From the sequence record PP496439.1: a stretch of DNA of 64,000 nucleotides; one strand, written 5' to 3'. The position numbers were made by a program, and so were the translations under genes. The notes beneath the pieces were generated by a model. The model was not told the DNA's origin. It was given only the letters and a program-made list of their open reading frames with translations, and made no database searches. Numbering within the stretch: the first letter of the stretch is position 1; each line of letters starts with the position of its first letter. This document shows, in pieces, positions 18,947-59,470 of the stretch.

Positions 18947-19008
18947 AGCGTATAGCAATCGAATGCGTGGAATTAGCCCTTAACGGCGTCCCCACTAGTG
19001 GAGAACAC

Positions 19009-20487
19009 ATGAAATCTGTAGCCGTTGACTACCAAAAGATAGCCAAGGAATGCCAGTGCACCGAGCTGCCTTCCAAGGTAAGAGTTACTCGTGCACGGGT
19101 CTATCCAAACTTGAGGACGTGCCTACTCTTCCTCAAGTACGATGCCAAAGGTGAACTGGTACAAGCCGAGATCACTGCGCCGTACGACACGTCCACCGAG
19201 CCAAAGGTGAGGGTGCTCAAACATCCTGACAAGAAGTCCGACTTCCTTTCATTATATAGGGCGCTGATCCGCCACCAGATCATACCCGAGTCTATTCCGA
19301 AGAAAGGTAACGGGATTGCACCAACGCTGGAGGTCATCGGCACACTGGTGAGCCTGCTGCCGGAACGGGATGTCGAAACCTTCCGTACGCTGACCCCGGC
19401 CATCCAGACTGGCAGCGTCATGTACGTCCCGCTGGTCACGTCCCGGCCAATGCCCATGGTGCAACACTGGATACCTGTTGACCAGCATTCAGAGCTGGGC
19501 ATGATCGAGCTGGTCGATACGGATAGCAAGCCTTTCCTTAATCAGTGGGTCAACAGGTTGAGCAACACCGCCACTGGTTATGTGATCTACACCCCCGAAG
19601 GCTCACACGGTCAGGAACTAGCCTGCTTCCGGGTGCCCAATGTGCAAGGGGAGGAACTGTGTGTGGTCAAGAAGGTTGACTTCACCCTGACTGTTGCTCG
19701 CACGCTCAAGCCGGTACTGACTGTATCCACCAAGAGTACTCGGGCAGTGTCCCGCATTCCCCTACCCCACTATCTGATGCTGCGCAATCACCACATAAAG
19801 GTGGGCACGGTTATTTCCCTGCGTCGTAACGACCGAGGTGGGTTGGTGTACCATGAGACGGTGGCCGAGGAAGGCATGACGCCCCTGCCACTGTGCCCAC
19901 ACTGCCACAGTGGCTCTGTGCTGAGAGGTAGTAGCAATGACGTGTACTGCAATAACGATTCATGCCGAGGCCTAGCCATCGTGCGACTTCGCTACATCTT
20001 GAACAACAAGCTGGACGTCAAGTACCTGAGCGACAATAAGGTAACAGCGCTGATCAATGACAAGCAGGACCTGTTCAGCTTGCTTAAGACACCGACTCAC
20101 CTATTGCGGCACAGAGCGGGCTTCGGTGCACGTACGGTGGATGCGCTGGAAGAGAAGCTGAACACTATCGCCGGTCTTCCACTGCACACGCTGGCCGAGA
20201 TGTCCTGCGCTTTCTACAACGTGGGTGTGCCCCCGCTGGATGAGATGGTGTTCAAGAAGATCTTTTCCGTTATGTCGATTGACTACCTGAAAGCACTGCC
20301 CTCCACCGGTAAGATGTACAGCCAGTTGCTCGACATCGAAGGTATCCGCAACAACCGCGCAGTGGCTTTCCTTGCTGGCTGGCCTGCATTTCAACAGTGG
20401 ATGATAGACCTGAACGCTGCCCTACAGTCTCGCAGCGCAATCTCCTCCACGGTAAATAACCCGAAACAAATTCGAGGTGTGAAATGA
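19009..20487 (+). CDS. NAD-dependent DNA ligase homolog, probably catalytically inactive
   Basis: OB-fold segment (LKPVL...IKVGTVISLRR), CPHC...CNNDSC zinc finger and HhH (AGFGARTV) are present. No KxDG adenylation motif. Start revised to ATG 19009. Confidence 0.65.
   Translation: MKSVAVDYQKIAKECQCTELPSKVRVTRARVYPNLRTCLLFLKYDAKGELVQAEITAPYDTSTEPKVRVLKHPDKKSDFLSLYRALIRHQIIPESIPKKGNGIAPTLEVIGTLVSLLPERDVETFRTLTPAIQTGSVMYVPLVTSRPMPMVQHWIPVDQHSELGMIELVDTDSKPFLNQWVNRLSNTATGYVIYTPEGSHGQELACFRVPNVQGEELCVVKKVDFTLTVARTLKPVLTVSTKSTRAVSRIPLPHYLMLRNHHIKVGTVISLRRNDRGGLVYHETVAEEGMTPLPLCPHCHSGSVLRGSSNDVYCNNDSCRGLAIVRLRYILNNKLDVKYLSDNKVTALINDKQDLFSLLKTPTHLLRHRAGFGARTVDALEEKLNTIAGLPLHTLAEMSCAFYNVGVPPLDEMVFKKIFSVMSIDYLKALPSTGKMYSQLLDIEGIRNNRAVAFLAGWPAFQQWMIDLNAALQSRSAISSTVNNPKQIRGVK
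20452..20458 (+). promoter_or_regulatory. GTAAATR element upstream of queC-1
   Basis: GTAAATA about 25 nt before the ATG at 20484. Confidence 0.45.
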
Positions 20488-21248
20488 ACAATCAAAACAG
20501 AACTCGTATCGCTGTGCTTGTCGGCGGCGGTCTGGACTCACATGCGTACATGGTATTGAAAGCCGACCAGCCTCAGACAGACTTCATTCATGTGGACTAC
20601 GGCCAGCGGGTTGCAGTAGCCGAGAGAAACGCCGTGTTGCAAATGGCTGAGAAGCTGGGCATTGCCCGCAGCCGGGTGTACACGCTGATCTGCAACAAGA
20701 AGAATCACATGCGCAAGGTCAATGACGGTGTGGGTGTGTTGTTTGGCACCGGCCCGGTCGAGATGGACAATGCGTTTGTTAAGGGACGTAACCTGTTCCT
20801 GATTCAGAAGGCCATCGAGCTGGGCTACGGTCACGTGCACTTGACGCTGACCCAAGAGCGTGGCCGGATGTTCCCCGATGCCGATCTGGCATTCGTCCAG
20901 CTGGTTGACAACCTGATGCACCGCAGTTATGACGTGAGGGTATCCGCCCCCTACATCATGGAAGACAAGCATCGGGTGATGTTCAAGGCGTATCGGCATT
21001 GCCCCGAGTTCCTCGATATGTCTTTCACGTGCTGGGTAGGTCCTTATGTGGAATGTGGCACGTGCCCGCACTGCGTCAAGAAGGAAAAGATTCGAGCCGA
21101 GATGATCGTTGAGAAGATTGAATACGATCTCAGCAAGGATGAACGTGAGGCGCAGTGGGAGCAAGTCAAGGCAGGCTACGGCGACGCGTTGAAGCCCGCT
21201 GAGACCATCAACATGAACATTCAGGTTGTTGACGGAGGACTGAAATGA
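20484..21248 (+). CDS. queC: QueC-family ATP pyrophosphatase (paralog 1)
   Basis: GGGLDS PP-loop, DYGQR, FVKGRNL, FPD and TC...CGTCPHC zinc motif. Confidence 0.8.
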   Translation: MNNQNRTRIAVLVGGGLDSHAYMVLKADQPQTDFIHVDYGQRVAVAERNAVLQMAEKLGIARSRVYTLICNKKNHMRKVNDGVGVLFGTGPVEMDNAFVKGRNLFLIQKAIELGYGHVHLTLTQERGRMFPDADLAFVQLVDNLMHRSYDVRVSAPYIMEDKHRVMFKAYRHCPEFLDMSFTCWVGPYVECGTCPHCVKKEKIRAEMIVEKIEYDLSKDEREAQWEQVKAGYGDALKPAETINMNIQVVDGGLK

Positions 21249-21955
21249 ACAAGTTCTTAGGTTGGTTCAAGCGTCTGCTGGATAAGAAGCACAAGTCGAT
21301 CACGATGACGTTGACCGACGCCGAAGGTAAGTTGGTCACCATCCACATACCGCAAGGTGCGGGTGTCGAATACACGCTCTCGAAGTCGGGCACCCACTTG
21401 AACGTCTCAGTTAAAGACGACGTCTTCATGTTGCGCACGAATGGCGCTGGAGTCGGTGGCAGTGGAAGTTCCAAGCCCGGTCTCAACGGTGGCCCCGGCC
21501 ATACACCTATCCCCCGGTCCCCAAGCTTCACGGGCGCTGGTACGCCGAACTACGGTCACGCAGGCGACCCGCCTGTTGGTGCTCAAGCTTCGTTCCCTAT
21601 CGGCGCCCGAGCAACTGTTTCTGGTGGTGGGCGCGTTGGTGGCCTGTCAGGTGGAAGCGCAAACGGCACAATGGCTGGTGGTGGAGATGGCTTCGTTCCC
21701 TCTCCAATCCGTAGCTCTGATCGAGCTTACCTGATTAGAGGTTTGTATTACGTCATCACGACGAAGAAGATAACGGGAGAGCAATACCCGATCCATGAGC
21801 TTCTGCATTGGGGTAAGAAGTCAATCGAACTCATGGGCAAGTTCTCCACCGTCCGAGACGCTATCGACGAACTCAAATTGAAGACGGGTATCCCATTCGA
21901 AGACCTGACGGACTATCAGGTTGATTCCCTTCCCAAACGACTGTGCAAGCCTTGA
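21245..21955 (+). CDS. Gly/Pro-rich hypothetical protein
   Basis: 236 aa with an ATGA overlap and a central low-complexity linker. Confidence 0.65.
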   Translation: MNKFLGWFKRLLDKKHKSITMTLTDAEGKLVTIHIPQGAGVEYTLSKSGTHLNVSVKDDVFMLRTNGAGVGGSGSSKPGLNGGPGHTPIPRSPSFTGAGTPNYGHAGDPPVGAQASFPIGARATVSGGGRVGGLSGGSANGTMAGGGDGFVPSPIRSSDRAYLIRGLYYVITTKKITGEQYPIHELLHWGKKSIELMGKFSTVRDAIDELKLKTGIPFEDLTDYQVDSLPKRLCKP

Positions 21956-21993: not shown

Positions 21994-22812
21994 ATGACCA
22001 CTGCGCCCCCAAAGATTATCGTTGCATTCAGCGCCGGTACAGATTCAACTACAGCGGCCTACTACTATCGCAAGCTCGGCTATCAGGTAACGCTGGCCGT
22101 GTTCGATGACGGCGCATGCAACGATCCACTTGGCCCTCTGTACGATCCGAACAAGCCGAAGGACTTGACCAACTTCTCGGATGAGTTCTACGATTACGTA
22201 CGGATTCACCAAGAGCACACGGAAGGCCATCTTCAGTTCGACTTCGTGGAGATTCGTTATCCGCAACTCGCATTGCTGGAAGCCAACAAGACAGCCAAGC
22301 CCGGTCGGGACAATGCAGCAGCAGCAGAGGCTGACGGCTTGGGCTTCTGGGTCGGCTTCAAGGGCCTGATGGCAATGTTGCTGATGAGCCACGGCGCCGC
22401 CAATGGTTACGAGGCAGTAGTCTTCGGCCACATGCCGTACAACAACCATTACGAAGATGAGCTGCCCCAGAACTTCGAGCTGCTGCGTCAGTACATGGTT
22501 ACGGCCTATGGCAGCCGAGTGGAAATTCCTCAGATCTACCACCCATTCTATCGACCGAATTTCGATACCAAGGAAAAGGTTATTGAGCTGGCTCAGGCAA
22601 TCGGCGTGCCCTTGCGAGATACCTATTCGTGCCGCCGAGGTGAAGTAGAAACCCGAGGTATCCTCCTGCCACTTCTGCGTGGCGGTAACTCCAACTACGT
22701 GAGCCCCACCTACCGTTGGAAGCATTGTGGTACGTGTGAGAACTGTGTCGAACGCAAGCGAGCCTTCGCGGCGCTGGGCATGAAAGATCCTGCCCCTTAT
22801 ATGGAACATTGA
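21994..22812 (+). CDS. QueC-like ATP pyrophosphatase (paralog 2, divergent)
   Basis: FSAGTDS PP-loop, TKEKVIELAQAIGVPLRDTYSC, and HCGTCENCVERKRAF. Confidence 0.75.
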   Translation: MTTAPPKIIVAFSAGTDSTTAAYYYRKLGYQVTLAVFDDGACNDPLGPLYDPNKPKDLTNFSDEFYDYVRIHQEHTEGHLQFDFVEIRYPQLALLEANKTAKPGRDNAAAAEADGLGFWVGFKGLMAMLLMSHGAANGYEAVVFGHMPYNNHYEDELPQNFELLRQYMVTAYGSRVEIPQIYHPFYRPNFDTKEKVIELAQAIGVPLRDTYSCRRGEVETRGILLPLLRGGNSNYVSPTYRWKHCGTCENCVERKRAFAALGMKDPAPYMEH

Positions 22813-22813
22813 T

Positions 22814-23830
22814 ATGGCCCTTTCAATCTGGCCGCTGACCGAAGGTGAACTCGGTCAGGGCCTCGTCAACGAACTGAATCGTACCAGCAAGGCGCTGGTG
22901 AACCGGAGTATGTGGTCTTTGCCATTGCTCCGGCGTTTGTTTTATCGGCGCACCGAGATTGGTGTCCCGGAGCTACTCCACGTCTGTACCAGCATTCATC
23001 GGGGCAAGACTTACTTCTGCCTGTTGGTGAACTTCCGAGATGTGGTGATGGGCAACCCCGAGCAATACGGATGGGACCTAGCTGGCCGGTGGTTGTTCTA
23101 CGATGTGGATCTGCTGGATACCCCGGAGTTTAAACAGGTAAACGCGGCTATTCGTAAGGTGGCTACGGTCAACACGGTTACCTACGGTCAAGCATTCGTT
23201 CCGGATGAAGGTGGTATGGGGGAGGAGCACTGGATCAAGAAACTGAAAGGTAACTACCGCCCCCACATCTTCGGCGAAAAGTCAAAACAGGTTATCGTCA
23301 GTCAGACCTGCGGACACGCGGCTACTCACGTTCTGACCGAGGCAGTGATGTCATTCGGTATCCAGCGCGCTGAGAGATTTCTCGCGGAAGGTCAGTCGGA
23401 TGTCATGCCGGAGTTGTATGACCTACCCATGCAGCTAGCCGGTCTAGGCTCGATCCCTGGAACCCGGATTGGCACCGTGTCGCTCACCTGCCGGGATACC
23501 CGTGCGCTGATCGGTACCCTGTCGTTCTACGTTGTGGCAGGCTTGGGTCACAGTGATATCTTGTATATGCACGAGATGCTGATTGATCCGGATCCGAAGT
23601 GGAAGCCTCTATCGGTGGCCGTCAACTTGCACATTCAGGCAATCATGTATGTGCGCTATCTAAACAGCCGATCTGATCGGGCTTCGGACTTGGTTATCAA
23701 CCTCGGATTCAACTTGGACGAGAAGTACAACACATACAAAGAGGTGTTCCGTCCGAACAAGTCCGAAATGGAAATCTATACCGGCATGCACACCGAGCCC
23801 GGCGTCCCACTGTCCTGTTTCAAGGGGTAA
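22814..23830 (+). CDS. FemABX/GNAT-like (putative aminoacyl/acyl transferase) protein 1
   Basis: WIKKLKGNYRPHI segment and C-terminal INLGFNLDEKYNTYKEVF, a Fem-like (D/N)LG...YK..F pattern. Confidence 0.5.
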   Translation: MALSIWPLTEGELGQGLVNELNRTSKALVNRSMWSLPLLRRLFYRRTEIGVPELLHVCTSIHRGKTYFCLLVNFRDVVMGNPEQYGWDLAGRWLFYDVDLLDTPEFKQVNAAIRKVATVNTVTYGQAFVPDEGGMGEEHWIKKLKGNYRPHIFGEKSKQVIVSQTCGHAATHVLTEAVMSFGIQRAERFLAEGQSDVMPELYDLPMQLAGLGSIPGTRIGTVSLTCRDTRALIGTLSFYVVAGLGHSDILYMHEMLIDPDPKWKPLSVAVNLHIQAIMYVRYLNSRSDRASDLVINLGFNLDEKYNTYKEVFRPNKSEMEIYTGMHTEPGVPLSCFKG

Positions 23831-23833
23831 GAC

Positions 23834-24835
23834 ATGTACACTCCGTATTCCCAAAACAGTCTGATGCAATCGATCCCGTTGGATGACCAAGGTACATTCG
23901 CCCATCCGCCGTATACGATGGAAGGAGAGTTAACCGACGTGTGGACGAACCCCAACCTATATGGGTTCGTCAGCCTGTTGAACGGCCAGAGCAATAGCCG
24001 GGCCTATCGAGACTGGATGACCACCCACAATCTTCCAGCACTGTTCCTCGGTCCGCATCATGAAGACAACTTCTGGTTTGAATTCAGCACTGGTCTCTAT
24101 TCCAACTGCACGCTGGATTACAACGAGATCAACGTCCAAGGCAACCTGCAGGACTTCCTTGGGAGATTGACGTCATCTCGCCGTCGCTCCGTGCTCAAGG
24201 CAAAGGAAACGGATACAATGATCCACAAGGCAGGCTCGGTAGCCAACTTCAACCTGTATCATCCGGTGGAGGGTAGGCTGTATAGTCTTACCGCGATTCA
24301 CGAACGCCGGGTGATGAAAGATATTTCAGAGTTTATCGAATCGAAACTTTGGAGTATGAAGCAGACGCCTACTGACCTCACGTACGGGGCATTCACCACT
24401 CTGATGGACTACATCCGGTTGAAGCAGCGAGAGGATACGCCACTCGGCCACCTACTGCGCGCCGTTCATCTATTGGTCATTCGAGACGAACGTTCAGGGT
24501 TTATCGTGTCGGTACACCTGGTGGCGATCAACACGTTGAAAGATGATCGCCATAATCCTATCAAGACCTACTTGCACTCCTTTGCGCGCATCACTGTTCT
24601 CCCTGCACGTATCGCCCTACTCGCGTTGATCAAGGTGGTTCAAGAGTTAAACGTCACTAGTCAGTACGCGTCCCGTACACTGGCGAAGATTGACTATCTT
24701 GACGTGAGCAACGTGGTGCTGTCCGAGCGAGAGCAGTACAAGTCGGACTTCTTCACCGGCAAATGCCAAGTGCGTGCGTGGGCATCCCCGGCGCTGCTGG
24801 AACGACAGTTACCTTTCGTTACGCCGATCCCGTAA
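23834..24835 (+). CDS. FemABX/GNAT-like protein 2
   Basis: LQDFLGRLTSSRRRSVLKA and C-terminal YLDVSNVVLSEREQYKSDFF. Confidence 0.55.
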   Translation: MYTPYSQNSLMQSIPLDDQGTFAHPPYTMEGELTDVWTNPNLYGFVSLLNGQSNSRAYRDWMTTHNLPALFLGPHHEDNFWFEFSTGLYSNCTLDYNEINVQGNLQDFLGRLTSSRRRSVLKAKETDTMIHKAGSVANFNLYHPVEGRLYSLTAIHERRVMKDISEFIESKLWSMKQTPTDLTYGAFTTLMDYIRLKQREDTPLGHLLRAVHLLVIRDERSGFIVSVHLVAINTLKDDRHNPIKTYLHSFARITVLPARIALLALIKVVQELNVTSQYASRTLAKIDYLDVSNVVLSEREQYKSDFFTGKCQVRAWASPALLERQLPFVTPIP

Positions 24836-24839
24836 CTCT

Positions 24840-24846
24840 GTAAATG
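24840..24846 (+). promoter_or_regulatory. GTAAATR element
   Basis: Intergenic, about 43 nt before the ATG at 24890. Confidence 0.5.
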
Positions 24847-24889
24847 ATGGGAACAGCCCCACCATCACTTCATCTCTAGGGTAGTTCCC

Positions 24890-25942
24890 ATGCAAGACTT
24901 CGATAAGATAATGATCGATAGTAGTTTGACATCCAATCTGGTGTACGCAGGGTTGGGTAACTTGATCACGCCCCGCGCACTTGACCTGCTGATCGAACAT
25001 CAGGCTGCACTGGAAAACGTATACGCCAATCTGGAAACAGCGTATCAGATTACCCCACCCTTCCCCTGTGAAGCTGCATTCAATTACCCTGACAAAGATC
25101 CTGTGCTGGTCGCCGACTATCTGAATGCTACTCCCGCCATCCGTTGCGGAGAGCTGGCTGGATTCGAGGCAAAGCCCGGCAGTTACTACCATGCGCCCGC
25201 CGCTGGTATCTCCCCGGAACATCGCATCGACGTACGTGGTATGTCTTTGCGTGAGTTCGACCACTATCTGGTTGAGCGTAAGGAAGTATCCCGTATCACT
25301 ACCAATCTGGTGGCCGACAAGTTCCGCTGTGAGACGCATGTGTACAAAGTGGATGAAGATCATATCCTGATCCATGACGCCGAACGAGTTGGGATCAGCC
25401 AGACGGACTTCCGCCGCATGTGGGCGCAGACCCGCCGCCGGGAAATCGCTGAAAACTATCTGCAGTACATGCCCATCGAAGACTCCGCCAAGGATGATCA
25501 GGTGGTGCGACTGATCAACGAAGACGTAGCACGGGTGTTAGCCCAGAACGTCGACTACGACCGCATGATTCCGCCCGAGCTGATCTTCGATGGTCAGGGC
25601 AAGCCGGTGCTGACCGTGCTGAAAGATTGCAACGCCAAGGTGTTGGGCATTGGTGTGTACGTCATCTACAAGTCAGCTGACCCAGAGCATGACAGCGAAC
25701 TGCACTGGCGTGGCGCTTTCTACGATCACGAAGATCCTCGCGTAGCATCCATGGGCATTGAACACGCTCTGGTTGCCAGCGCACTGCACACAGCGTACGC
25801 CTGCAACGCGGTCCTCTATCTGACCAAGGCACCTAAGTCCGTGTGTGACGCATGGAAGACGGAAGTGCACCAAGGTTACGGGCTGGTCCGTAATGCGATG
25901 CCGGAACTGTCTGACACCCCTTACATTCTGGCTATCCAGTAA
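24890..25942 (+). CDS. FemABX/GNAT-like protein 3 (weakest match)
   Basis: SLREFDHYLVERKE segment, and a C-terminal GNAT-like strand/helix pattern ending LYLTKAPKSVCDAWK. Confidence 0.4.
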   Translation: MQDFDKIMIDSSLTSNLVYAGLGNLITPRALDLLIEHQAALENVYANLETAYQITPPFPCEAAFNYPDKDPVLVADYLNATPAIRCGELAGFEAKPGSYYHAPAAGISPEHRIDVRGMSLREFDHYLVERKEVSRITTNLVADKFRCETHVYKVDEDHILIHDAERVGISQTDFRRMWAQTRRREIAENYLQYMPIEDSAKDDQVVRLINEDVARVLAQNVDYDRMIPPELIFDGQGKPVLTVLKDCNAKVLGIGVYVIYKSADPEHDSELHWRGAFYDHEDPRVASMGIEHALVASALHTAYACNAVLYLTKAPKSVCDAWKTEVHQGYGLVRNAMPELSDTPYILAIQ

Positions 25943-25955
25943 ATAGCCGGTAACT
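25939..25955 (+). promoter_or_regulatory. Extended GTAAATR element
   Basis: GTAAATAGCCGGTAACT, 16/17 identical to the copy at 55744. Confidence 0.6.
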
Positions 25956-25975
25956 CCATCCATTGAGGTACTTCC

Positions 25976-28060
25976 ATGAAATCCGTGAACCCCATCTTCA
26001 AACACGTTCCCCAGTTCGACTGGCCTGTCATTCCCCGTGCGCAGTGGGAAGAGATCGTCAAGGGAAAAGAGCATGTGATGTTCGACTCCTTCTCGCAGCT
26101 CGCTCAAGTGTTGGCTATCCCGGTGAGCAGTTACCAGTTCTACTTCGAAGATGGGTCCACGTTGTTCGCCGGTCCCGAAGCAACCTTCACCGCCGCGCCG
26201 TACCCGCTGTATCAGGACCTTGAATTCGTCCTGACCCCTGACGAGACGTTGGTGCCGGGTCTTGCACTGGATACCAAACCGTGGGGCCTGTACACCGACG
26301 AATGGGTGGACAACTACGAAGGTGCGGACAAGGAAGACATCGGCAACAAGACCGGGTTCGAATTCATTCCGCTGTCGGACGCCTTGAAACTGGTGGTCCT
26401 CAACACGGAGACCATGCAGCTCCAGTACACTGCAATCGAGAGCTTCACGTACGACGGCGTGACTTACGTATACCTGCTGGCCGATGGCGTGTGCTGGGTA
26501 CTGGCGGGCAAGTCCGGTGGTCTGGTTGCCAGCGAGCATGACAAAGGTGCTGCGTTCATCATGGTGTCCCATCCCGAGTTCGCCGGGTGCAGCGTAGACA
26601 ACATGTACCCAAGTGAGTTCGGTGAAGCGGAAGCGACGTTCTACGTTCAAGACGAGGAACACAATTACCTGGACGCGGCTAACCGCATCTTCGAGGAAGC
26701 CAAGGACGTAGGCGCTGGCACTTTCCTGACCATTGAGACCGGGGATGGACTGCCGACGGCACTGGCCTACAACCTGCGTTACAGTGACGTGGCCCACGTT
26801 AACCTGCCGATGCACAACATCCACCAGTTCACGTCTCTTCACGTACGACTGGGCGAGACGCCTAACTTCTCCGAGGCCCCGGAAGCGTGCCGCATGAAAG
26901 AGGTGATGGAGTACCTGGCGGACCCCGAGTCCCCGGTAGACCATTACTGGTCTGCCATCATGGTACTGGAGAAGAACTTCCCCGGTTTCGCCGACGCCCT
27001 GAAAGACTCCAGTGTCCCAACCCGTGACATCGTGCACTCCAAACAGGCGTTCAGCTTGGAGATCGATCGCCAGTTCGGCAAGGAAGTGGCAAGCAAGATC
27101 GGCCTGAACACTGGCGTATTCGCCCAAGTGAAAGACCGTGATGAGTGGCTGACCCGTCAAGACGATTTTCCTACCGACAAGGTGGCCGTCAAGTACAACA
27201 CCAAACACTTCATCGGCATCTTCGACAAGGACGAGGTATCGAATTCCATCAACATGTGGCTGGCCGGTCAACCCGGAGAGTCGCTGATGATCGAAGAGTA
27301 CTTCGGTGAGGGCAATCAGGAATTCAACCTGTGCTATGTGATCAACGAAGAGTTCGTGCAGCCGACGCTGTTCCTGTGCGAAGTCAACAAGATCCTCGGT
27401 AATGACACCGGCGGCAAAGGTGGCAACACGCTGGCCTGCCATGATGCTCGTATTAACAAGTACCCTGAGTTCTTTGAGCCGGTCAATGCTGCGCTTGCTA
27501 ACCTGCATGAGCACGTGGAAGGTGTGAAGGGCTGGGTTGACCTGAGCTTCATGGTCCGCGACGGCATCCCTTACTTCACAGAGTGGTGCATTCGAATTGG
27601 CTGCTCCAACAACGCCACCATCGTGCGCCAGATGGAGACCCCGCTCGACGTTCTGCTGACCAACGTGGTTAACAAGGTGCATACCGAGCTGTCTTGGAAG
27701 CACTCCATGTCTGTCAGCGTGGACATCTACAGCATGCCGCTGTCCGCAGGCAATGATGCCAACATGCAGTTCACCGAGTCGCTGACCACGCCGGTCGAGA
27801 TGGTGTCCCCGCTCAATCTGGAACTGGCGGCGGAGAGTTTCTTCGACCCGATTGATTCGGCCTGGAACGCGGTGTACGACGGCTACATTGTCGAGGCGTA
27901 CAACCGATATGGCACCGTCTCGGGGTATTCCACCAACTGGAACTTCGCCTGCAATGCGGCGTACAATCACTTGAAAGATCAGTCGGTGTTGTACGGGGCA
28001 TACCGCGAAGCGCCTGCCCACCACGACCCACTGACTCTGTTCCCTTTCCTCAAGGCGTAA
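25976..28060 (+). CDS. ATP-grasp amide ligase, PurD (GAR synthetase)-like C-terminal half, with unknown N-terminal domain
   Basis: VAVK, LMIEEYFGEGNQEF, NKILGNDTGGKGGNT, and GWVDLSFMVRDGIPYFTEWCIRIG (compare PurD V.EFN.RFG). Confidence 0.65.
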   Translation: MKSVNPIFKHVPQFDWPVIPRAQWEEIVKGKEHVMFDSFSQLAQVLAIPVSSYQFYFEDGSTLFAGPEATFTAAPYPLYQDLEFVLTPDETLVPGLALDTKPWGLYTDEWVDNYEGADKEDIGNKTGFEFIPLSDALKLVVLNTETMQLQYTAIESFTYDGVTYVYLLADGVCWVLAGKSGGLVASEHDKGAAFIMVSHPEFAGCSVDNMYPSEFGEAEATFYVQDEEHNYLDAANRIFEEAKDVGAGTFLTIETGDGLPTALAYNLRYSDVAHVNLPMHNIHQFTSLHVRLGETPNFSEAPEACRMKEVMEYLADPESPVDHYWSAIMVLEKNFPGFADALKDSSVPTRDIVHSKQAFSLEIDRQFGKEVASKIGLNTGVFAQVKDRDEWLTRQDDFPTDKVAVKYNTKHFIGIFDKDEVSNSINMWLAGQPGESLMIEEYFGEGNQEFNLCYVINEEFVQPTLFLCEVNKILGNDTGGKGGNTLACHDARINKYPEFFEPVNAALANLHEHVEGVKGWVDLSFMVRDGIPYFTEWCIRIGCSNNATIVRQMETPLDVLLTNVVNKVHTELSWKHSMSVSVDIYSMPLSAGNDANMQFTESLTTPVEMVSPLNLELAAESFFDPIDSAWNAVYDGYIVEAYNRYGTVSGYSTNWNFACNAAYNHLKDQSVLYGAYREAPAHHDPLTLFPFLKA

Positions 28061-28063
28061 TCC

Positions 28064-29227
28064 ATGAGCACTCCATTCCAAGAGTTCACCCTAGAAGGGT
28101 GGATTCGCTACATGAGAGATGAAAGCATCATCTGGCGCGCGTACGCTGATGGTCATCCGGATAAGGTCGAGTTCAGCCCGGAGTGGCGTGACGAGATGTA
28201 TCGGTTGATGGTGCAGTTCAAAGATCTGCTGCCGATGTCGTTTTCCAATCCGGTGTACGGCTTCACTGAAGGTTGGCTGGAAGGGCTCGGACTCCAGCCC
28301 TTTTATGGCGATGATCCGTTCAATCCGATGGTGCAACCGCTTAGCCACCCTCTGGTGCATGTGGGGCTTCCGTTTACTCTGAGCGAGCTGACGGCGGGCG
28401 TATGGGACTGTCAGTCCCTGAGCGCTCACCTGGAGCGTCCGCTGCTGGTCGATACATTCGAACCGATCCCAGTGCCATCTATTAGCCTGGACGCTTACAA
28501 AGCCGTCCTGACCGTACGGGACCGGGAAGAGATCGTGATGAGTGCGGGAACCCCGGTGAACTACTTCCTCTGGTTGAATAGTCCGATCACCGAACTCAAA
28601 GACGACTTCGACGTTTATCTGGCCAGCCTGACCAAGAAGCGCCGCTACAAAGTGAAGCAGGCACTGGCGACAGTGGGCACCGAAGAGAACCCGGCTATCA
28701 GCGTCAGTACTGGATCTCGTTTCGGCGAAGGGTTGTTGTCCGATCAGGTGAACAGCATCCTCGCGACTTTCGAAGATCCGGTGGACATCGAGTGCATGCT
28801 TCTTCAGCTGCTGTTCGGGGTGGCAACCTGCAATACCCATCCGCATCTTGTCGATCTGGTTTGTGCAGACCAGCAGTTGGGGATCTTCATCAAGCGCAAC
28901 GGCCACACGATGAATTTCCTCTACAACCGTGACCCGGACAACCGCGCTGACTCAGGCATCAACCTGCTGACCCAGTACGTGCGCCATCTGCACATGAACC
29001 GCCCGGAAGGTGTGATGTACGTGGACCCGACATGTCGATATCGGCCTGACGAGGACAGTATGAACACCTACAAGCGGGTGATCACCAACGAGAACCGGTA
29101 TCACCCAATGCCGTTCGTCTCGGCTGACCCTGCGCATATTGAAGGTGTGATTACCCCGGCGTTCATTGCAGGTCATTGGCAGATGTCGGCGTCCAATGGC
29201 CCGGCCAATCCTGAGATGATGGAGTAA
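28064..29227 (+). CDS. FemABX/GNAT-like protein 4
   Basis: DDFDVYLASLTKKRRYKVKQA is the clearest Fem-like motif. C-terminal YVDP...NTYKRVI. Confidence 0.6.
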   Translation: MSTPFQEFTLEGWIRYMRDESIIWRAYADGHPDKVEFSPEWRDEMYRLMVQFKDLLPMSFSNPVYGFTEGWLEGLGLQPFYGDDPFNPMVQPLSHPLVHVGLPFTLSELTAGVWDCQSLSAHLERPLLVDTFEPIPVPSISLDAYKAVLTVRDREEIVMSAGTPVNYFLWLNSPITELKDDFDVYLASLTKKRRYKVKQALATVGTEENPAISVSTGSRFGEGLLSDQVNSILATFEDPVDIECMLLQLLFGVATCNTHPHLVDLVCADQQLGIFIKRNGHTMNFLYNRDPDNRADSGINLLTQYVRHLHMNRPEGVMYVDPTCRYRPDEDSMNTYKRVITNENRYHPMPFVSADPAHIEGVITPAFIAGHWQMSASNGPANPEMME

Positions 29228-29229
29228 CC

Positions 29230-30177
29230 ATGGCAAAGCACAAGGTCAAAAGGTTGGAAATCAACCACATCTACGACTTCTACCCGTTGTATCAGGTGAT
29301 GTACGGGCGTGGCATGGAGACCAAAGCGTTCGAGGTCTCCAAGTTCGCCAAGATGGTGCTGGACTTCGAAGCATCAACCAGTACTCGCCGGAAGTGGGAC
29401 GTGCTGGAACCTTTCAGCGGTATCAGCGAGCATGAACACTTCTTCGCTGCGACCGGCCTGAACATCGAGCATTACACCGGCATGGACATCGTGGTTCCAG
29501 ATGGAGCCAAAAACGTCATTCAAGGCGACATCATCACCGACACCCTTCCGTTTCACGTCAACGCGGTGTTCGCCTTCTACTACAGCTTGCAGAATGTACG
29601 GGACGCCAAGACTGGCATGCACACGCGGGAAAAGCTGGTGGAGTTCTTCGACAACATCCTCGGCCATCTGCAAGTCAATGCGAACAAGAGCCGTATGCCC
29701 GCAGTGTTCGCTTTCCACCTTGACCAGCCTGAAGACCCTAATTACTATCTGACGTCCCGTGCCGACGTTGGAGGTGAACAGTCATGGACCGCACCCGCGT
29801 GTGGTCTGCTGGGGCAGTGGGTCAAGTGCAAACCGACTGACACTCTGGAAGTGAAGTGCAATCTGGACACCTGGTACAACCGTGTGCAGTGCACCGCGTA
29901 CGATCAGGCGGAGGATATCCAGATTCTGGTAAATGGGCGAGTAGTGGCGACCGTTGAGATCGAACAGCCGTTCACTCATCGGGTCTGGACCGAGCATGAG
30001 GTGATCGACATCCTGCGGGGTCTGGACTACAATCTGCACTTCCACATGTACAACGGCACCATCTCCAATTACGACTTCTTGATGACCCGTTTGGAAGACA
30101 AGCCCGTTCCCGGCTATGAAGAGGCTAATACTAATCAGATGACAACTGATATGCTGGTTGTCGTTAATCCGAGGTAA
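29230..30177 (+). CDS. Class I SAM-dependent methyltransferase-like protein A
   Basis: VLEPFSG (motif I), GMDI, IQGDI and AVFAFYYSL. Confidence 0.65.
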   Translation: MAKHKVKRLEINHIYDFYPLYQVMYGRGMETKAFEVSKFAKMVLDFEASTSTRRKWDVLEPFSGISEHEHFFAATGLNIEHYTGMDIVVPDGAKNVIQGDIITDTLPFHVNAVFAFYYSLQNVRDAKTGMHTREKLVEFFDNILGHLQVNANKSRMPAVFAFHLDQPEDPNYYLTSRADVGGEQSWTAPACGLLGQWVKCKPTDTLEVKCNLDTWYNRVQCTAYDQAEDIQILVNGRVVATVEIEQPFTHRVWTEHEVIDILRGLDYNLHFHMYNGTISNYDFLMTRLEDKPVPGYEEANTNQMTTDMLVVVNPR

Positions 30178-30179
30178 TA

Positions 30180-31097
30180 ATGGCTAAGCCCAAGATCCCT
30201 ACACGAACCATCCCCACGTTGTACCAAGACTGGGGGTTGTACAGCGCCATCTGCGAACTGCCGCAGGAGACGATGCTGATGATGTCGCGCTTCGTGGCAG
30301 ACCGGACCATCGAACATGCCGAGCGCCATGACCTGGAAAGTGTGGCGATCATGGAGCCCTTTAGCGGGCCGATCCCGTATTACGAGCCAGACATCCGAAG
30401 CTTCCTGACTCGCGCCCGTGTTGACCTGGATACGTACGATCATGTCGAGTACCTTGATCATGGTGGATTGTCGGAAGACAACAATATCATCATCGGTGAC
30501 ATCACCACCATCGACCTGAAACAGAAATACGACGTCATCTACGGCAGTTACGGCAGCTTGGCCTGCCTGCTGCTGGATCACACGCACAACAAAGCTTACG
30601 AGAAGTCGCACGCGGCGCTGGTCAACATTCGCGAGCACCTGAAACCCAACGGCATCTTCGTCCTGAACGCCAACGGATCCAGCGAAAGCCTGCTGAATAA
30701 CCTGTTGAACTCCGATGAGCCGGATCAAGAGATTCGCGTCCGTCCGGGATCGCAGTTGGGCAAGGCGTTCCGAATCAAACCAGACAGTAACGCGCTGCTT
30801 CGTTTCTCCTACAACGTGGAGTACGACCGACGCACCACCTGCACCATGTGCCACTACAGCGATATGGTGCTGTCTGTAAATGGAGTTGACATCCAGCGCT
30901 GGGAGGTGGAATCCCCGACGTATCTTGCGCCGCTGGATGAACCCGAACTAATTCGAATGGCAGGTATGGCTGGTTTCAATCTGGAAAACACTGAGTTCTA
31001 CGGATTGGACACCACCGGTTATCCTGCCTTCTTCAAAATGGATACGGTCTGCGACGGGTCATGGTCACCCGCCGAGTTCGTAGTCTTTCGCACCTAA
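30180..31097 (+). CDS. Class I SAM-dependent methyltransferase-like protein B
   Basis: IMEPFSG, IIGDI, YDVIYGSYGSL and HLKPNGIFVLN. Confidence 0.7.
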   Translation: MAKPKIPTRTIPTLYQDWGLYSAICELPQETMLMMSRFVADRTIEHAERHDLESVAIMEPFSGPIPYYEPDIRSFLTRARVDLDTYDHVEYLDHGGLSEDNNIIIGDITTIDLKQKYDVIYGSYGSLACLLLDHTHNKAYEKSHAALVNIREHLKPNGIFVLNANGSSESLLNNLLNSDEPDQEIRVRPGSQLGKAFRIKPDSNALLRFSYNVEYDRRTTCTMCHYSDMVLSVNGVDIQRWEVESPTYLAPLDEPELIRMAGMAGFNLENTEFYGLDTTGYPAFFKMDTVCDGSWSPAEFVVFRT

Positions 31098-31107
31098 CGA
31101 GGTTCCT

Positions 31108-32343
31108 ATGAGCGTTATCATCCCCACCGTAGCGATGGAGAGTGGTCAGCCAGACATGATCATTCAAGGCTGTTCCACGGGTCGCCTCTCTATGGCCGAG
31201 CCTAACGAGAGCGCCAAACCTAAGTCTTCCAAGAAGCTGTACGAACGTGAAGACCTGATGGCGTACGACAGCGAGTCGGAGCACTGGCAGAAGCAGTTGG
31301 CCCGCCGCTACGCTCACCACGGTGAGATGGTCGGTGTGTTGAACAACGTCGAGGTGGTGCCGGAAGCCACCTATCAGAACTTCGACATGAAGATCACCCC
31401 GTACACCGCGCAGTTGATGGACCAGAACGACCCCAACTGCCCGATCCGTTTGCAGTACATGCCGACCAATAAAGAGCTGGAGTCGATTCAGCGCGAAGAG
31501 ACCATGCACAACGAGCTGGGCGAGGAAGAGGACACCATCCCCGGTACCTCGGTCGTGCATCGCTACCCGCGTCGTGTCTTGTTCCTGACCACTACCCAAT
31601 GCGCCAGCTTCTGCCGTTACTGCACCCGTGCACGCATAGTCTCCCACGGCGGCGAAGCGGCGATCACCAAGAAGCACCTTGACGCCAGCATCGACTACAT
31701 CGCCGGGAACAAGGACATCGAAGACGTGCTGCTGTCCGGCGGTGACCCGTTCATCCTCCCAGACAACAAGCTCGACGAGATCCTCGGTCGTATCCGTGCT
31801 GAAGCACCTCACGTTCGCTTCCTGCGTATTGGTAGCCGACTGCCGGTCCAGATGCCGACTCGTATCACTCCAGAGCTGTGCGAGATTCTGGAACGCCACA
31901 ATGTCAACATGGTCAACATCCATGTGAACCATCCGAAAGAAGTAACCCCTCTGCTGGCCTCCCGGATGAAGATGTTGCGCAAAGCTGGCGTGATGATCGG
32001 CAATCAGGCCGTCATGCTGAAAGGCGTGAACGACTCCATCCAGGTGATGACCGAGCTGTGCTTGCGTATGGTCGAGATGGGCGTCCGTCCGTACTACGTC
32101 TACTCCAACGATCCGGTGGCCCAGGCCGCACACTTCACCGTGTCGCTGAAAGAGATGCTGAATATCAACGAGGGTATGCGTGGCTTCCTGTCTGGCCCGG
32201 CTATGCCAACCTTCGTGGTAGACGGCGTGGGTGGCTTGGGCAAGATGCCGGTGCAGAAAGAGTACGTCGGCTTCGATAAGAACGGCGGTATCTTCGCCCA
32301 GAACTTCGAAGGGAAAACGGCCCGCATGCCCCATCTGGAATAA
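31108..32343 (+). CDS. kamA: Lysine 2,3-aminomutase (radical SAM/PLP)
   Basis: HRYPRRV, CASFCRYCTR, SGGDP, RIGSR, NHPKE, NQAVMLKGVND, PYYVYSND and FVVDGVGGLGK. Confidence 0.92.
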   Translation: MSVIIPTVAMESGQPDMIIQGCSTGRLSMAEPNESAKPKSSKKLYEREDLMAYDSESEHWQKQLARRYAHHGEMVGVLNNVEVVPEATYQNFDMKITPYTAQLMDQNDPNCPIRLQYMPTNKELESIQREETMHNELGEEEDTIPGTSVVHRYPRRVLFLTTTQCASFCRYCTRARIVSHGGEAAITKKHLDASIDYIAGNKDIEDVLLSGGDPFILPDNKLDEILGRIRAEAPHVRFLRIGSRLPVQMPTRITPELCEILERHNVNMVNIHVNHPKEVTPLLASRMKMLRKAGVMIGNQAVMLKGVNDSIQVMTELCLRMVEMGVRPYYVYSNDPVAQAAHFTVSLKEMLNINEGMRGFLSGPAMPTFVVDGVGGLGKMPVQKEYVGFDKNGGIFAQNFEGKTARMPHLE

Positions 32344-55789: not shown

Positions 55790-56761
55790 ATGAAAGATAT
55801 GCGCTATACCGAACTGTTCTATTCCCTCCAAGGTGAGGGGTTGCGCGTTGGGGTGCCTTCGGTATTCTTCCGCATGTTCGGTTGCAACTTCGAGTGCAAG
55901 GGATTCTCCAATCCTGAAATGAAAGATCCCAACGTGATCCCGGCCATCAATCTGCTGGCAATCAACGACGCCGATCTGGAACTGGGCTGTGACTCTCGTT
56001 ACAGCTGGCACAAGGACTATCGCAACCTGGCCATCAAAGCTGCTCCCCATGAGGTGGCCAACACTTTGATCGACTTCACGAAAGAGAAGCACTTGGCGGC
56101 GGTGGCTCGCTGGCCCAAGCGCAATCGAGCAGGTAATGTCGTCCGCTTGATCCCCGGACTTCCTATAGATGGAGTCCTTCAGATTGCCACGATGGCTCAT
56201 GTGCCTGACTGGGTCTTCACCGGCGGTGAACCGTTCATGCAGCAAGAGCAGCTGGAAGGTCTGCTGCGTCACGCCATGTACGTTGTGGAAGAGGAGGACG
56301 TTAACTTTGGCCTGCTTGGCCTGCCAATGCTGACTTTCGAGACCAACGCCAGTATTTCGATGAGAGACTCCATGCTGGATTGTCTCAAAGATTACAACGA
56401 TGGCTTCGGCGACGTGCACTTCTCTAACAGCCCCAAGCTGTCATTCACGGGAGAGCATCGCAACGCGGCTCTGAAGCCCTACGTTATCGAGCAACAATGC
56501 TCTATCGGGGGCTCCAGTTCGTTCAAATTCGTGGTGCGCCCTGCTCGCGAAGACTTCGATGAGCTGATGGAGTTCATGCAAGAGTATCAACCCTACATGG
56601 ATGAAGGTAGTATCGAGAACATATACGTCATGCCGGTCGGTGCCAGCCTACATCAACAGCAGGCCATCGCCACACAGGTTGCCGAGCTGGCACTGGAATA
56701 CGGCCTGTCCTACAGCCCCCGACTCCAGTGTGACCTGTGGGCCAACAAGATAGGGACGTGA
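55790..56761 (+). CDS. queE: 7-carboxy-7-deazaguanine synthase (radical SAM)
   Basis: ELFYSLQGEG...FFRMFGCNFEC...CDS, TGGEP, ETN, SPK, KFVV and SPRLQ. Confidence 0.9.
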   Translation: MKDMRYTELFYSLQGEGLRVGVPSVFFRMFGCNFECKGFSNPEMKDPNVIPAINLLAINDADLELGCDSRYSWHKDYRNLAIKAAPHEVANTLIDFTKEKHLAAVARWPKRNRAGNVVRLIPGLPIDGVLQIATMAHVPDWVFTGGEPFMQQEQLEGLLRHAMYVVEEEDVNFGLLGLPMLTFETNASISMRDSMLDCLKDYNDGFGDVHFSNSPKLSFTGEHRNAALKPYVIEQQCSIGGSSSFKFVVRPAREDFDELMEFMQEYQPYMDEGSIENIYVMPVGASLHQQQAIATQVAELALEYGLSYSPRLQCDLWANKIGT

Positions 56762-58729: not shown

Positions 58730-59470
58730 ATGGCTATTGATGCACATAAGTATCCGTTGTTGGCGGCGGCTCAAGACCGACTCATCGAGTCTGGTCAGCG
58801 CTATTTTGCGAATGACAATATCCATCCGGTATTTGAATACCTGGACAACATGGCATTGCCTATGCCAGTCGGGGCTCAGACACTGGAGCAGATGAAGGAG
58901 GCTGTTCAAGAGAAGTACGGCGAGCTGCTGGAACTCCTCTTGATCGATTGGGCTGCGGATCATAACTCCGAAGGTACCCCGCGCCGTGTCGCCAAGATGC
59001 TGGTCGAGGAAACCTACAAGGGTCGCTATCAGCCGACGCCGAAGATCACCGCGTTCCCCAACGACAGCAAGCGTACCCAGATGATCGTGATCGGGCCGCT
59101 GCGCGTTGAGAGCCAGTGCAGCCATCACCATCAGAACATCCGGGGCTGGGCATGGGTCGGTGTTATGCCGTCGGAAGATGGTACACTGATCGGTCTGTCG
59201 AAGTTCAGCCGCCTACTTGATCATATCTGCCGCCGTCCTCAGATCCAAGAGGAAATGGTTGCTCAGGTGTGTCACCAGTTGAACGATCTGGTCAAGGACA
59301 ACCTCGGTGTCGCGGTCGTGATCAACGCAGAGCACCAGTGCATGGCCGTTCGGGGCGTGCAAGAGCCGTGTGCCCAAACCGTTACGTCGGAGATGCTGGG
59401 TGCGTTCCTCGAACCTGGTGTTCGTCAGGAGTTCCTGACCTACGTGCAAATGAACCCAGCCCCGTGCTAA
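58730..59470 (+). CDS. folE: GTP cyclohydrolase I
   Basis: TPRRVAKM, SQCSHHH, GLSKFSR, RRPQIQEE and AEHQCMAVRGV. Confidence 0.93.
   Translation: MAIDAHKYPLLAAAQDRLIESGQRYFANDNIHPVFEYLDNMALPMPVGAQTLEQMKEAVQEKYGELLELLLIDWAADHNSEGTPRRVAKMLVEETYKGRYQPTPKITAFPNDSKRTQMIVIGPLRVESQCSHHHQNIRGWAWVGVMPSEDGTLIGLSKFSRLLDHICRRPQIQEEMVAQVCHQLNDLVKDNLGVAVVINAEHQCMAVRGVQEPCAQTVTSEMLGAFLEPGVRQEFLTYVQMNPAPC

Follow-up and report, generated by a model that had tools for sequence, protein, structure and literature searches.

A predicted Fem-type transferase family found beside QueC-like and ATP-grasp genes in distant phages

Introduction

Four genes of similar length in the Pseudomonas putida jumbo myovirus vB_PpuM-Amme-1 raise the question of whether a phage encodes a line of Fem-type enzymes, and on what such enzymes would act. 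The genes, here called A, B, C and D, lie in the last 64 kb of the 202-kb Amme-1 genome (PP496439.1; identity 100%), the stretch that we analysed and refer to as the window. An earlier note had read them as four divergent Fem-like paralogs. The known Fem-type enzymes work on cell-wall cross-bridges, in lipid aminoacylation and in the synthesis of a few antibiotics. We find that the proposal is partly supported: among the four, one Fem-type enzyme (D) is certain and one (A) probable. The pathway suggested by the surrounding genes, which the earlier note did not take into account, is more interesting than the paralogy of the four.

Identity of the four genes

GenBank PP496439.1 labels the four products as hypothetical proteins (Amme1_00193-195 and 00197). 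We confirm the open reading frames (ORFs) on the + strand, with the coordinates and the lengths of 333–387 amino acids (aa) first reported for them.

22814..23830, + strand: A, 338 aa, probable divergent Fem-type (double-GNAT) transferase, from a profile match to the D family
23834..24835, + strand: B, 333 aa, protein specific to the P. putida phage lineage, with a helix-only match to the D family
24890..25942, + strand: C, 350 aa, protein specific to the P. putida phage lineage, with orthologs only
28064..29227, + strand: D, 387 aa, predicted Fem-type double-GNAT transferase, from its family, an AlphaFold model and Foldseek

All four are retained in eight related P. putida phages (nine including Amme-1), and their ratios of nonsynonymous to synonymous substitution rates (dN/dS) against the two most divergent relatives are 0.09–0.28. 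A–D are therefore real genes. By the same measure, purifying selection acts on all genes of the surrounding cluster.

Fold and family of D

An exhaustive HMMER search with a five-sequence profile of D brings together at least 84 proteins in one family; 60 have an E-value of 1e-10 or lower, and most have a length of 300–370 aa. A word-indexed search gave five relatives of D. The family is defined by the motifs WxNSP, YLxSLxxKRRYKVKxA and DPTC(x10-11)YKRxxxN. Its most conserved features are the basic helix (KKRRYKVK, aa 191–198 of D) and the aromatic-Lys pair (Tyr336-Lys337), which are the two marks noted at the outset, and Lys337 is conserved in at least 90% of the family.

We take the motifs YLxSLxxKRRxK and DPTC...YKR to resemble the signatures of PF13480 and PF04339, the Pfam families that the earlier note had named for comparison. 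When 77 family members were scanned singly, eight matched PF13480 (Acetyltransf_6; best E-value 3.8e-8), two matched PF04339 (FemAB_like) and none matched PF02388 (FemAB). The comparison finds these models in a part of the family: 69 of the 77 do not reach PF13480 (BioF2/CelD-like) or PF04339. The family is set apart by the marks WxNSP and DPTC and by the conserved genes that flank it. A, B, C and D themselves match nothing in Pfam even at an E-value of up to 0.1, these three models included, and nothing in PHROGs, NCBIfam or the PDB sequences.

The alignment of 77 sequences yields a confident AlphaFold model of D, with a predicted local distance difference test score (pLDDT) of 87.9 and a predicted TM-score (pTM) of 0.88. 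Foldseek finds 23 matches to this model in the PDB at an E-value of at most 1e-3, with about 300 aligned columns across both GNAT domains and sequence identities of 9–15% to the structural matches. The best neighbours are the aminoacyl-tRNA-dependent peptide synthases Sbb17 and Sba18 (E-value 2.8e-6 for Sbb17) and FemX of Weissella viridescens (9.6e-6). They are followed by alanyl- and lysyl-phosphatidylglycerol synthases and the C-domain of MprF (about 2e-5 for A-PGS/MprF) and, lower, by FemA (1.2e-3) and Ate1 (3e-3). On the basis of this model we assign to D the Fem-type double-GNAT fold, and D is by this fold a FemX-type transferase that probably depends on aminoacyl-tRNA. The fold itself is already known; the family, with D as its founding member, appears to be new and is unnamed.

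Fem-type double-GNAT enzymes use aminoacyl-tRNA, and FemX and DhpH-C combine a basic tRNA-binding helix with a C-terminal catalytic Lys (PMC12945691). The reference catalytic residues are Lys305 in FemX and Phe328-Lys329 in DhpH-C, with the aromatic residue preceding the Lys near the end of domain 2. In D, a conserved basic helix opens the second domain and a nearly invariant aromatic-Lys pair lies close to the C-terminus, which resembles what is described for both enzymes (PMC12945691); its helix and Lys337 plausibly correspond to the tRNA-binding helix and the catalytic lysine of FemX. D is also similar in size to FemX and to the Fem-type natural-product transferases (Sbb17/Sba18, Orf11 of the BD-12 pathway, PacB, VlmA and DhpH-C). 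It differs from all of these in context, being part of a phage cluster with deazapurine, ATP-grasp and aminomutase genes, whereas those enzymes serve cell-wall or antibiotic synthesis.

The donor assigned to D is tempered by its structural matches, which include double-GNAT proteins that use coenzyme A (CoA): 2wpw, the clavulanate double-GNAT protein, and VipF were both solved with acetyl-CoA. D and A could accordingly be acyl-CoA-dependent N-acyltransferases, a possibility that also draws on the Pfam matches of the D family to Acetyltransf_6, named as an acetyltransferase, and on a scan that found no tRNA gene in the 64-kb window. However, the 21 best PDB matches are aminoacyl-tRNA-dependent or uncharacterised proteins, and no CoA-using protein ranks above position 30, where the E-values are about 1000x weaker than the top. 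Host tRNAs would act as donors, and a Fem mechanism is consistent with the near-invariance of Lys337 and with the conserved basic helix KRRYKVK (PMC12945691). We consider an acyl-CoA donor unlikely.

Comparison of A, B and C with D

The earlier note had ascribed to all four proteins a common helix and a C-terminal (Y/W)K. The strings that it quoted are all present, at the following positions.

A: helix WIKKLKGNYR, aa 140–149; aromatic-Lys TYK, aa 307–309
B: helix DFLGRLTSSRR, aa 107–117; aromatic-Lys QYK, aa 301–303
C: helix FDHYLVERKE, aa 123–132; aromatic-Lys AWK, aa 321–323
D: helix FDVYLASLTKKRR, aa 182–194; aromatic-Lys TYK, aa 335–337

As background for these motifs we used the 193 stop-to-stop ORFs in the window that have a length of 100 aa or more. 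The literal helix consensus (F/W)xx(Y/F)LxxLxxxxR is matched by D alone of the four, and by one unrelated ORF of the background set. A looser regular expression, with the added requirement of [YW]K within the C-terminal 15%, selects exactly A–D among the 193 ORFs and is seen in at most five of 2000 shuffles of each; it is weak evidence, since it was fitted to the four after the fact. Aligned with one another by BLASTP, or by hhalign with shallow profiles of close orthologs, A–D give nothing significant.

Alignment of deeper profiles separates the three proteins. The A family (alignment A5, seven sequences) aligns with the D family (A3) over 163 collinear columns by hhalign (E-value 9.3e-5, probability 59%), and HMMER gives no match. 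The profile alignment sets WIKKLKGNYR of A on YLASLTKKRRYK of D, and TYK on TYK. A has a basic helix at aa 140–160 and the pair Tyr308-Lys309, and YK and FGxKS are invariant in its family. To judge from these profiles, A is probably a divergent homolog of D and a Fem-type double-GNAT transferase.

A is mosaic among the nine phages, with 65–69% protein identity between subgroups compared with 91–99% for the adjacent B and C in the same pairs. This suggests recombination or fast evolution at A alone.

In B, only the basic helix aligns with the D family, with aa 99–127 placed on 176–204 of D in 29 columns (E-value 1.1e-3, probability 20%). A second match, collinear over the GNAT core, lies at noise level, as do the E-values of 0.67 and 0.08 obtained with hidden Markov models. 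Among the 193 window ORFs, B is the best non-family match of a joint A+D profile, at an E-value of 0.08 that is equalled by a spurious ORF. No homolog of B was found in the phage genome collection beyond the nine P. putida phages. B is possibly a very divergent Fem-like protein, although this is not established.

For C, the sequence and profile searches give nothing significant against A, B, D or any family, profile or PDB structure, and homolog searches for it return orthologs only. A weak hhalign match connects aa 242–285 of C with the joint A+D profile (E-value 0.11). Its AlphaFold model, built from three near-identical sequences, has a mean pLDDT of 31.3 and is unusable. Structure prediction and Foldseek, which the earlier note had proposed as a check, thus point to Fem-type relatives for D and give no usable answer for C.

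We weighed these results for the possibility that A–D are all Fem-type double-GNAT paralogs, acting in sequence like FemX, FemA and FemB or as a hetero-oligomer and building a short peptide without a nonribosomal peptide synthetase. The fold of D, the alignment of A with D, and the helix of B with its second, collinear weak match over the GNAT core all point in this direction. So do the similar lengths, the basic segment at 30–50% of the length and the C-terminal aromatic-Lys pair, a combination unique in the window by the post hoc expression, and the match of C lies at the expected place of the joint profile. Against this stand the 29 columns, 20% probability and noise-level HMM values of B, the lack of any significant match for C and the failure of its model, and the single or paired genes of this type in related clusters (see below). 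A set of four paralogs is in our view rather improbable. With a match of 29 columns for B and none for C, four paralogs and a four-step line in the style of FemX/A/B are not established; of the Fem-like tandem GNAT fold that the earlier note had claimed for all, what stands is D, from family and model, and probably A, from the profile alignment. B and C are lineage-specific additions, perhaps further highly divergent copies, non-catalytic partners or unrelated enzymes.

The gene block and its counterparts in other phages

A–D belong to a tightly packed, co-directional run on the + strand, in the order LigA-like, Q1, X, Q2, A, B, C, G, D, E, F, KamA, with intergenic gaps of 2–54 nucleotides as calculated from the coordinates. 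The remaining genes of the run are as follows.

18967..20487, + strand: LigA-like protein, 506 aa, OB/Zn-finger/HhH region, first gene of the co-directional block
20484..21248, + strand: Q1, QueC-family PP-loop ATPase (PF06508, E-value 6.9e-19)
21245..21955, + strand: X, 236 aa, between the two QueC-like genes (dN/dS about 0.2)
21994..22812, + strand: Q2, divergent QueC-family protein (PF06508, E-value 2.8e-12)
25976..28060, + strand: G, 694 aa, with a predicted C-terminal PurD-like ATP-grasp amide ligase domain (NCBIfam purD, E-value 3.7e-7)
29230..30177, + strand: E, class-I S-adenosylmethionine (SAM)-methyltransferase-like, motif ILEPFSGxSEH, weak Methyltransf_31 match
30180..31097, + strand: F, paralog of E by BLASTP and hhalign
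31108..32343, + strand: KamA-family radical SAM amino acid 2,3-aminomutase (TIGR00238)

Two small ORFs and then topoisomerase II follow the KamA gene. A promoter and terminator scan of the window found nothing exceeding shuffled sequence.

Related clusters occur in other phages and in contigs, with these gene contents.

Vibrio coralliilyticus phages GR11A and GR7B: LigA-like, DUF5591 (ArcS-type), two QueC, a 351-aa protein, D-like, G-like, KamA, a small GNAT, topoisomerase II
Contig L012, 167 kb: QueC, QueC, a 281-aa protein (weak ATE_C match), D-like, ATP-grasp, E-like; near DNA polymerase and gyrase
Contig L014, 182 kb: Gat-QueC and further genes, then D-like, ATP-grasp
Shorter contigs: E-like, D-like, KamA; or ATP-grasp, D-like

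The recurring core consists of a QueC-like gene, a D gene and an ATP-grasp gene, which an A-type, E-type or KamA gene often accompanies. Each related cluster has one or two genes of the A–D type, not four, and the Amme-1 lineage has added B, C and F. The clusters are placed in replication modules, with helicase, DNA polymerase and gyrase or topoisomerase II genes as neighbours. No relatives came up when IMG/VR was scanned with profiles of G and of D. The Vibrio cluster contains a near-canonical QueC. Between its LigA-like and QueC genes, GR11A_00054 (L002:8224-9186) encodes a 320-aa protein with an ArcS-type DUF5591 match (E-value 3.3e-7), for which no counterpart was found in Amme-1.

Relatives of A are few. 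A word-indexed search gave close orthologs only, tblastn against phage genomes restricts A, B and C to the nine P. putida phages, and a scan of JGI metagenomes gave one locus. Three contigs are informative. In L003, a C-terminal fragment related to A lies directly upstream of a G homolog, and in L016 a 310-aa relative lies downstream of one. In the metagenomic contig L013 (L013:2-1480), a single ORF, of which 492 aa are seen before the contig edge, joins a Q2-type QueC-like part (residues 1 to about 195) to an A-like remainder, and is followed by G-like, E-like and D-like genes. This fusion suggests that A works with a QueC-like enzyme.

Q1 has the GGGLDS PP-loop, YGQx5E, GRN and the zinc motif Cx8CxxCxxC, and YPDC is absent. 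Q2 has a variant PP-loop, SAGTDS, and a C-terminal CxxCxxC, without YxQ, RN and YPDC. X matches nothing in Pfam, PHROGs or NCBIfam. In G, the ATP-grasp domain extends over about aa 354–586, with a weak GARS_A match beside purD, and the N-terminal half is uncharacterised; a shorter homolog in L012 matches GARS_A (E-value 2e-7) and GARS_C. G is conserved as a neighbour of D-family genes.

E and F are tandem paralogs (E-value 5e-8 by BLASTP, 3.9e-11 by hhalign). Orthologs of E are found in L003, L012, L013 and L017, and F was seemingly added in the Amme-1 lineage. Both are, weakly, class-I SAM-methyltransferase-like, with Methyltransf_31 E-values of 0.03 in two of eight E-type members and 0.042 in F. 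The KamA product scores 275.5 bits with TIGR00238 (cutoff 199.2) and matches the Pfam models Radical_SAM and LAM_C. Models of Lys, Glu and Arg aminomutases match it at E-values of 1e-86 to 1e-93, below their cutoffs. A KamA-family enzyme would make a beta-amino acid; this is a prediction to which no substrate is assigned.

The LigA-like protein matches NCBIfam LigA with residues 394–496 (E-value 4.8e-6), and has no Pfam match and no recognisable adenylation domain. Its Vibrio homolog, which heads the cluster there as well, matches DNA_ligase_OB and HHH_5. A full-length NAD-dependent ligase is annotated separately in Amme-1 (Amme1_00146). The domain matches suggest that the LigA-like protein is possibly a DNA-binding component.

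Elsewhere in the window, a 544-aa protein (50015-51649) carries a GDSL lipase/acylhydrolase domain at its C-terminus (E-value 4e-12).

Deazaguanine genes and the proposed pathway

Two further genes of the window belong to 7-deazaguanine synthesis, the first step of which is catalysed by FolE.

55790..56761, + strand: QueE-like radical SAM enzyme of the 7-carboxy-7-deazaguanine synthase type (phrog_2076, E-value 2.3e-41)
58730..59470, + strand: GTP cyclohydrolase I, FolE (PF01227, E-value 3.8e-39)

FolE further matches phrog_2197 (E-value 2.3e-46). The QueE-like protein further matches Fer4_12 (1.7e-6) and is homologous to phiST CGPG_00070 and to GR7B_00075. Both genes lie downstream of DNA polymerase, and the Vibrio phage GR7B has the same local synteny. 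Around them are unassigned ORFs of 114, 408, 129 and 193 aa, and the 408-aa one weakly resembles a sliding clamp.

In distant phages and in the phage-like contigs L012 and L014, D-family genes recur beside genes of the QueC-like, ATP-grasp, E-like and KamA types, and we infer from this that the conserved set may build an amino-acid-bearing derivative of 7-carboxy-7-deazaguanine (CDG), a reading that we hold about equally likely to be right or wrong. QueC-family enzymes ligate CDG to amines (PMC13329287). In the proposed pathway, FolE and QueE, with a host or unrecognised QueD activity, would lead to CDG. Q1 and Q2 would activate a carboxyl group as an acyl-adenylate and couple it to an amine, a reaction in which the defence enzymes Cap9 and QatC use CDG. 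The KamA-type aminomutase would supply a beta-amino acid, and the PurD-like ATP-grasp enzyme G would make a further amide bond. D would move an amino acid, probably from aminoacyl-tRNA, to the free amine of the growing side chain; A would be a second, divergent enzyme of the D type acting with the QueC-like Q2, and E and F would methylate. Phage DNA would be the probable destination of the product. As acceptor, a deazapurine derivative is more likely than a free peptide.

In its most specific form, the proposal is that guanine is replaced or decorated with a 7-deazaguanine bearing a short beta-amino-acid chain in Amme-1, GR11A, GR7B and several uncultured large phages. Ligases of the QueC, ATP-grasp and tRNA-dependent Fem types would put the chain together while it is attached to the base, and Amme-1 would extend or vary it with its extra genes A, B, C and F. 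This form is tentative and on present evidence rather unlikely. DNA of the jumbo-phage cluster to which Amme-1 belongs was in some cases obtained in very low yield with a standard kit and more efficiently with another column (10.1101/2024.03.26.586772); this poor purification is suggestive at most as a hint of modification. These phages are also strongly blocked by host prophages (10.1101/2024.03.26.586772).

Several points weigh against the CDG pathway and its placement on DNA. DpdA is encoded by all phages whose DNA is known to contain 7-deazaguanines (10.1101/2023.04.13.536721), and no PF01702 or PHROG match to a DpdA/TGT transglycosylase was found in the cluster genes or among the neighbours of FolE and QueE. 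The phiST DpdA3 has no detectable homolog among the window ORFs, although remote members could escape all of these searches, and QueD was not recognised in Pfam and PHROG searches of the FolE/QueE region. Q2 has lost most of the canonical QueC motifs, and B and C are without a supported fold. D itself misses the Pfam thresholds, its TM-scores to solved structures are modest (0.36–0.50), and the acetyl-CoA-using proteins among its matches count here as well. Co-directional phage genes need not act together.

With no recognisable DpdA or QueD, a small-molecule or protein target becomes a serious rival. The product could be a diffusible small molecule, for example a peptidyl-deazapurine or a compound resembling nucleoside antibiotics, or a deazaguanine or amino acid could be conjugated to a protein, for example for host takeover or to counter defence of the Qat type or of cyclic oligonucleotide-based antiphage signaling systems (CBASS). 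The closest solved relatives of D, Sbb17 and Sba18, act on the antibiotic intermediate streptothrisamine, and their pathway family also uses beta-lysine. Relatives of KamA include EpmB, which serves protein modification, and the QueC-family enzymes Cap9 and QatC have proteins rather than nucleic acids as their targets (PMC13329287). In contrast, the cluster of several unrelated phages lies in replication modules and next to the gene of a LigA-like, putatively DNA-binding protein, a divergent transglycosylase could hide among the unassigned proteins, and DNA modification is the role of all phage FolE/QueE/QueC sets that have been studied (10.1101/2023.04.13.536721). Taken together, the two non-DNA targets have in our estimate a small probability.

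The missing DpdA-like function also bears on B and C, either or both of which might not be transferases: they could supply another function that the pathway lacks, for instance base exchange by a highly divergent enzyme in place of DpdA, or could serve as a scaffold or in immunity or regulation, with a coincidental resemblance of motifs. They have no significant similarity to GNAT families and are absent from the clusters of L003, L013, L012 and the Vibrio phages. However, they match neither the TGT/DpdA families nor phiST DpdA3, and their sole signals, though weak, point to the Fem-like profile. Such a role for B or C is doubtful, though worth keeping in view.

B, C, X and the LigA-like protein were each considered as the missing transglycosylase; none is similar to phiST DpdA3 or to the TGT Pfam model, and the idea is unsupported. 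Thymidine hypermodification, considered from the radical SAM gene and a long thymidylate synthase, was dropped once the link of QueC with FolE and QueE appeared. The annotated thymidylate synthase of Amme-1, outside the window (L010:26809-27906), has 365 aa and matches its Pfam model at an E-value of 1e-55, being about 100 residues longer than the model.

Discussion

Known phage 7-deazaguanine systems consist of FolE, QueD, QueE and QueC with DpdA, and their products are dPreQ0, dADG, dG+, dCDG, mdPreQ1, fdPreQ1 and dDG. Amme-1 has FolE, QueE-like and QueC-family genes in common with them, and its relatives add Gat-QueC and an ArcS-type domain. It differs in that no DpdA or QueD is recognised and in its two divergent QueC paralogs; it adds Fem-type, ATP-grasp, KamA and methyltransferase-like genes, a combination unreported in the literature that we searched.

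Q1 and Q2 share the PP-loop ATPase scaffold and the zinc motif with Cap9 of type IV CBASS and with QatC, which join the carboxyl group of CDG to an amine (PMC13329287). Cap9 and QatC are bacterial defence enzymes that act on the N-terminus of a partner protein, whereas Q1 and Q2 are phage-encoded and have other partners. A further parallel is found in operons that pair ATP-grasp with GNAT-type amidoligases, which were predicted to make small peptides or protein tags in bacteria (Iyer et al. 2009, as cited in PMC7824862). Amme-1 likewise pairs an ATP-dependent amide ligase with a GNAT-fold peptide-bond enzyme, here linked to phage deazapurine synthesis genes.

Our literature searches found no published description of the gene set or of the D family. 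What appears to be new is the family, together with the phage setting in which it occurs and its connection with deazapurine genes. Whatever the chemistry, the analysis adds a family of at least 84 members with a confidently predicted fold, and a conserved neighbourhood that was hitherto hypothetical in databases. If the proposed pathway is right, a phage Fem-type family would tie tRNA-dependent peptide-bond formation to nucleobase chemistry, and a phage DNA or nucleotide hypermodification not seen before would bear on the evasion of restriction and CRISPR and on enzymes for DNA labelling. Should the product be a 7-deazaguanine with a chain, it would be the first nucleobase modification made with aminoacyl-tRNA, and would represent a new class of DNA hypermodification.

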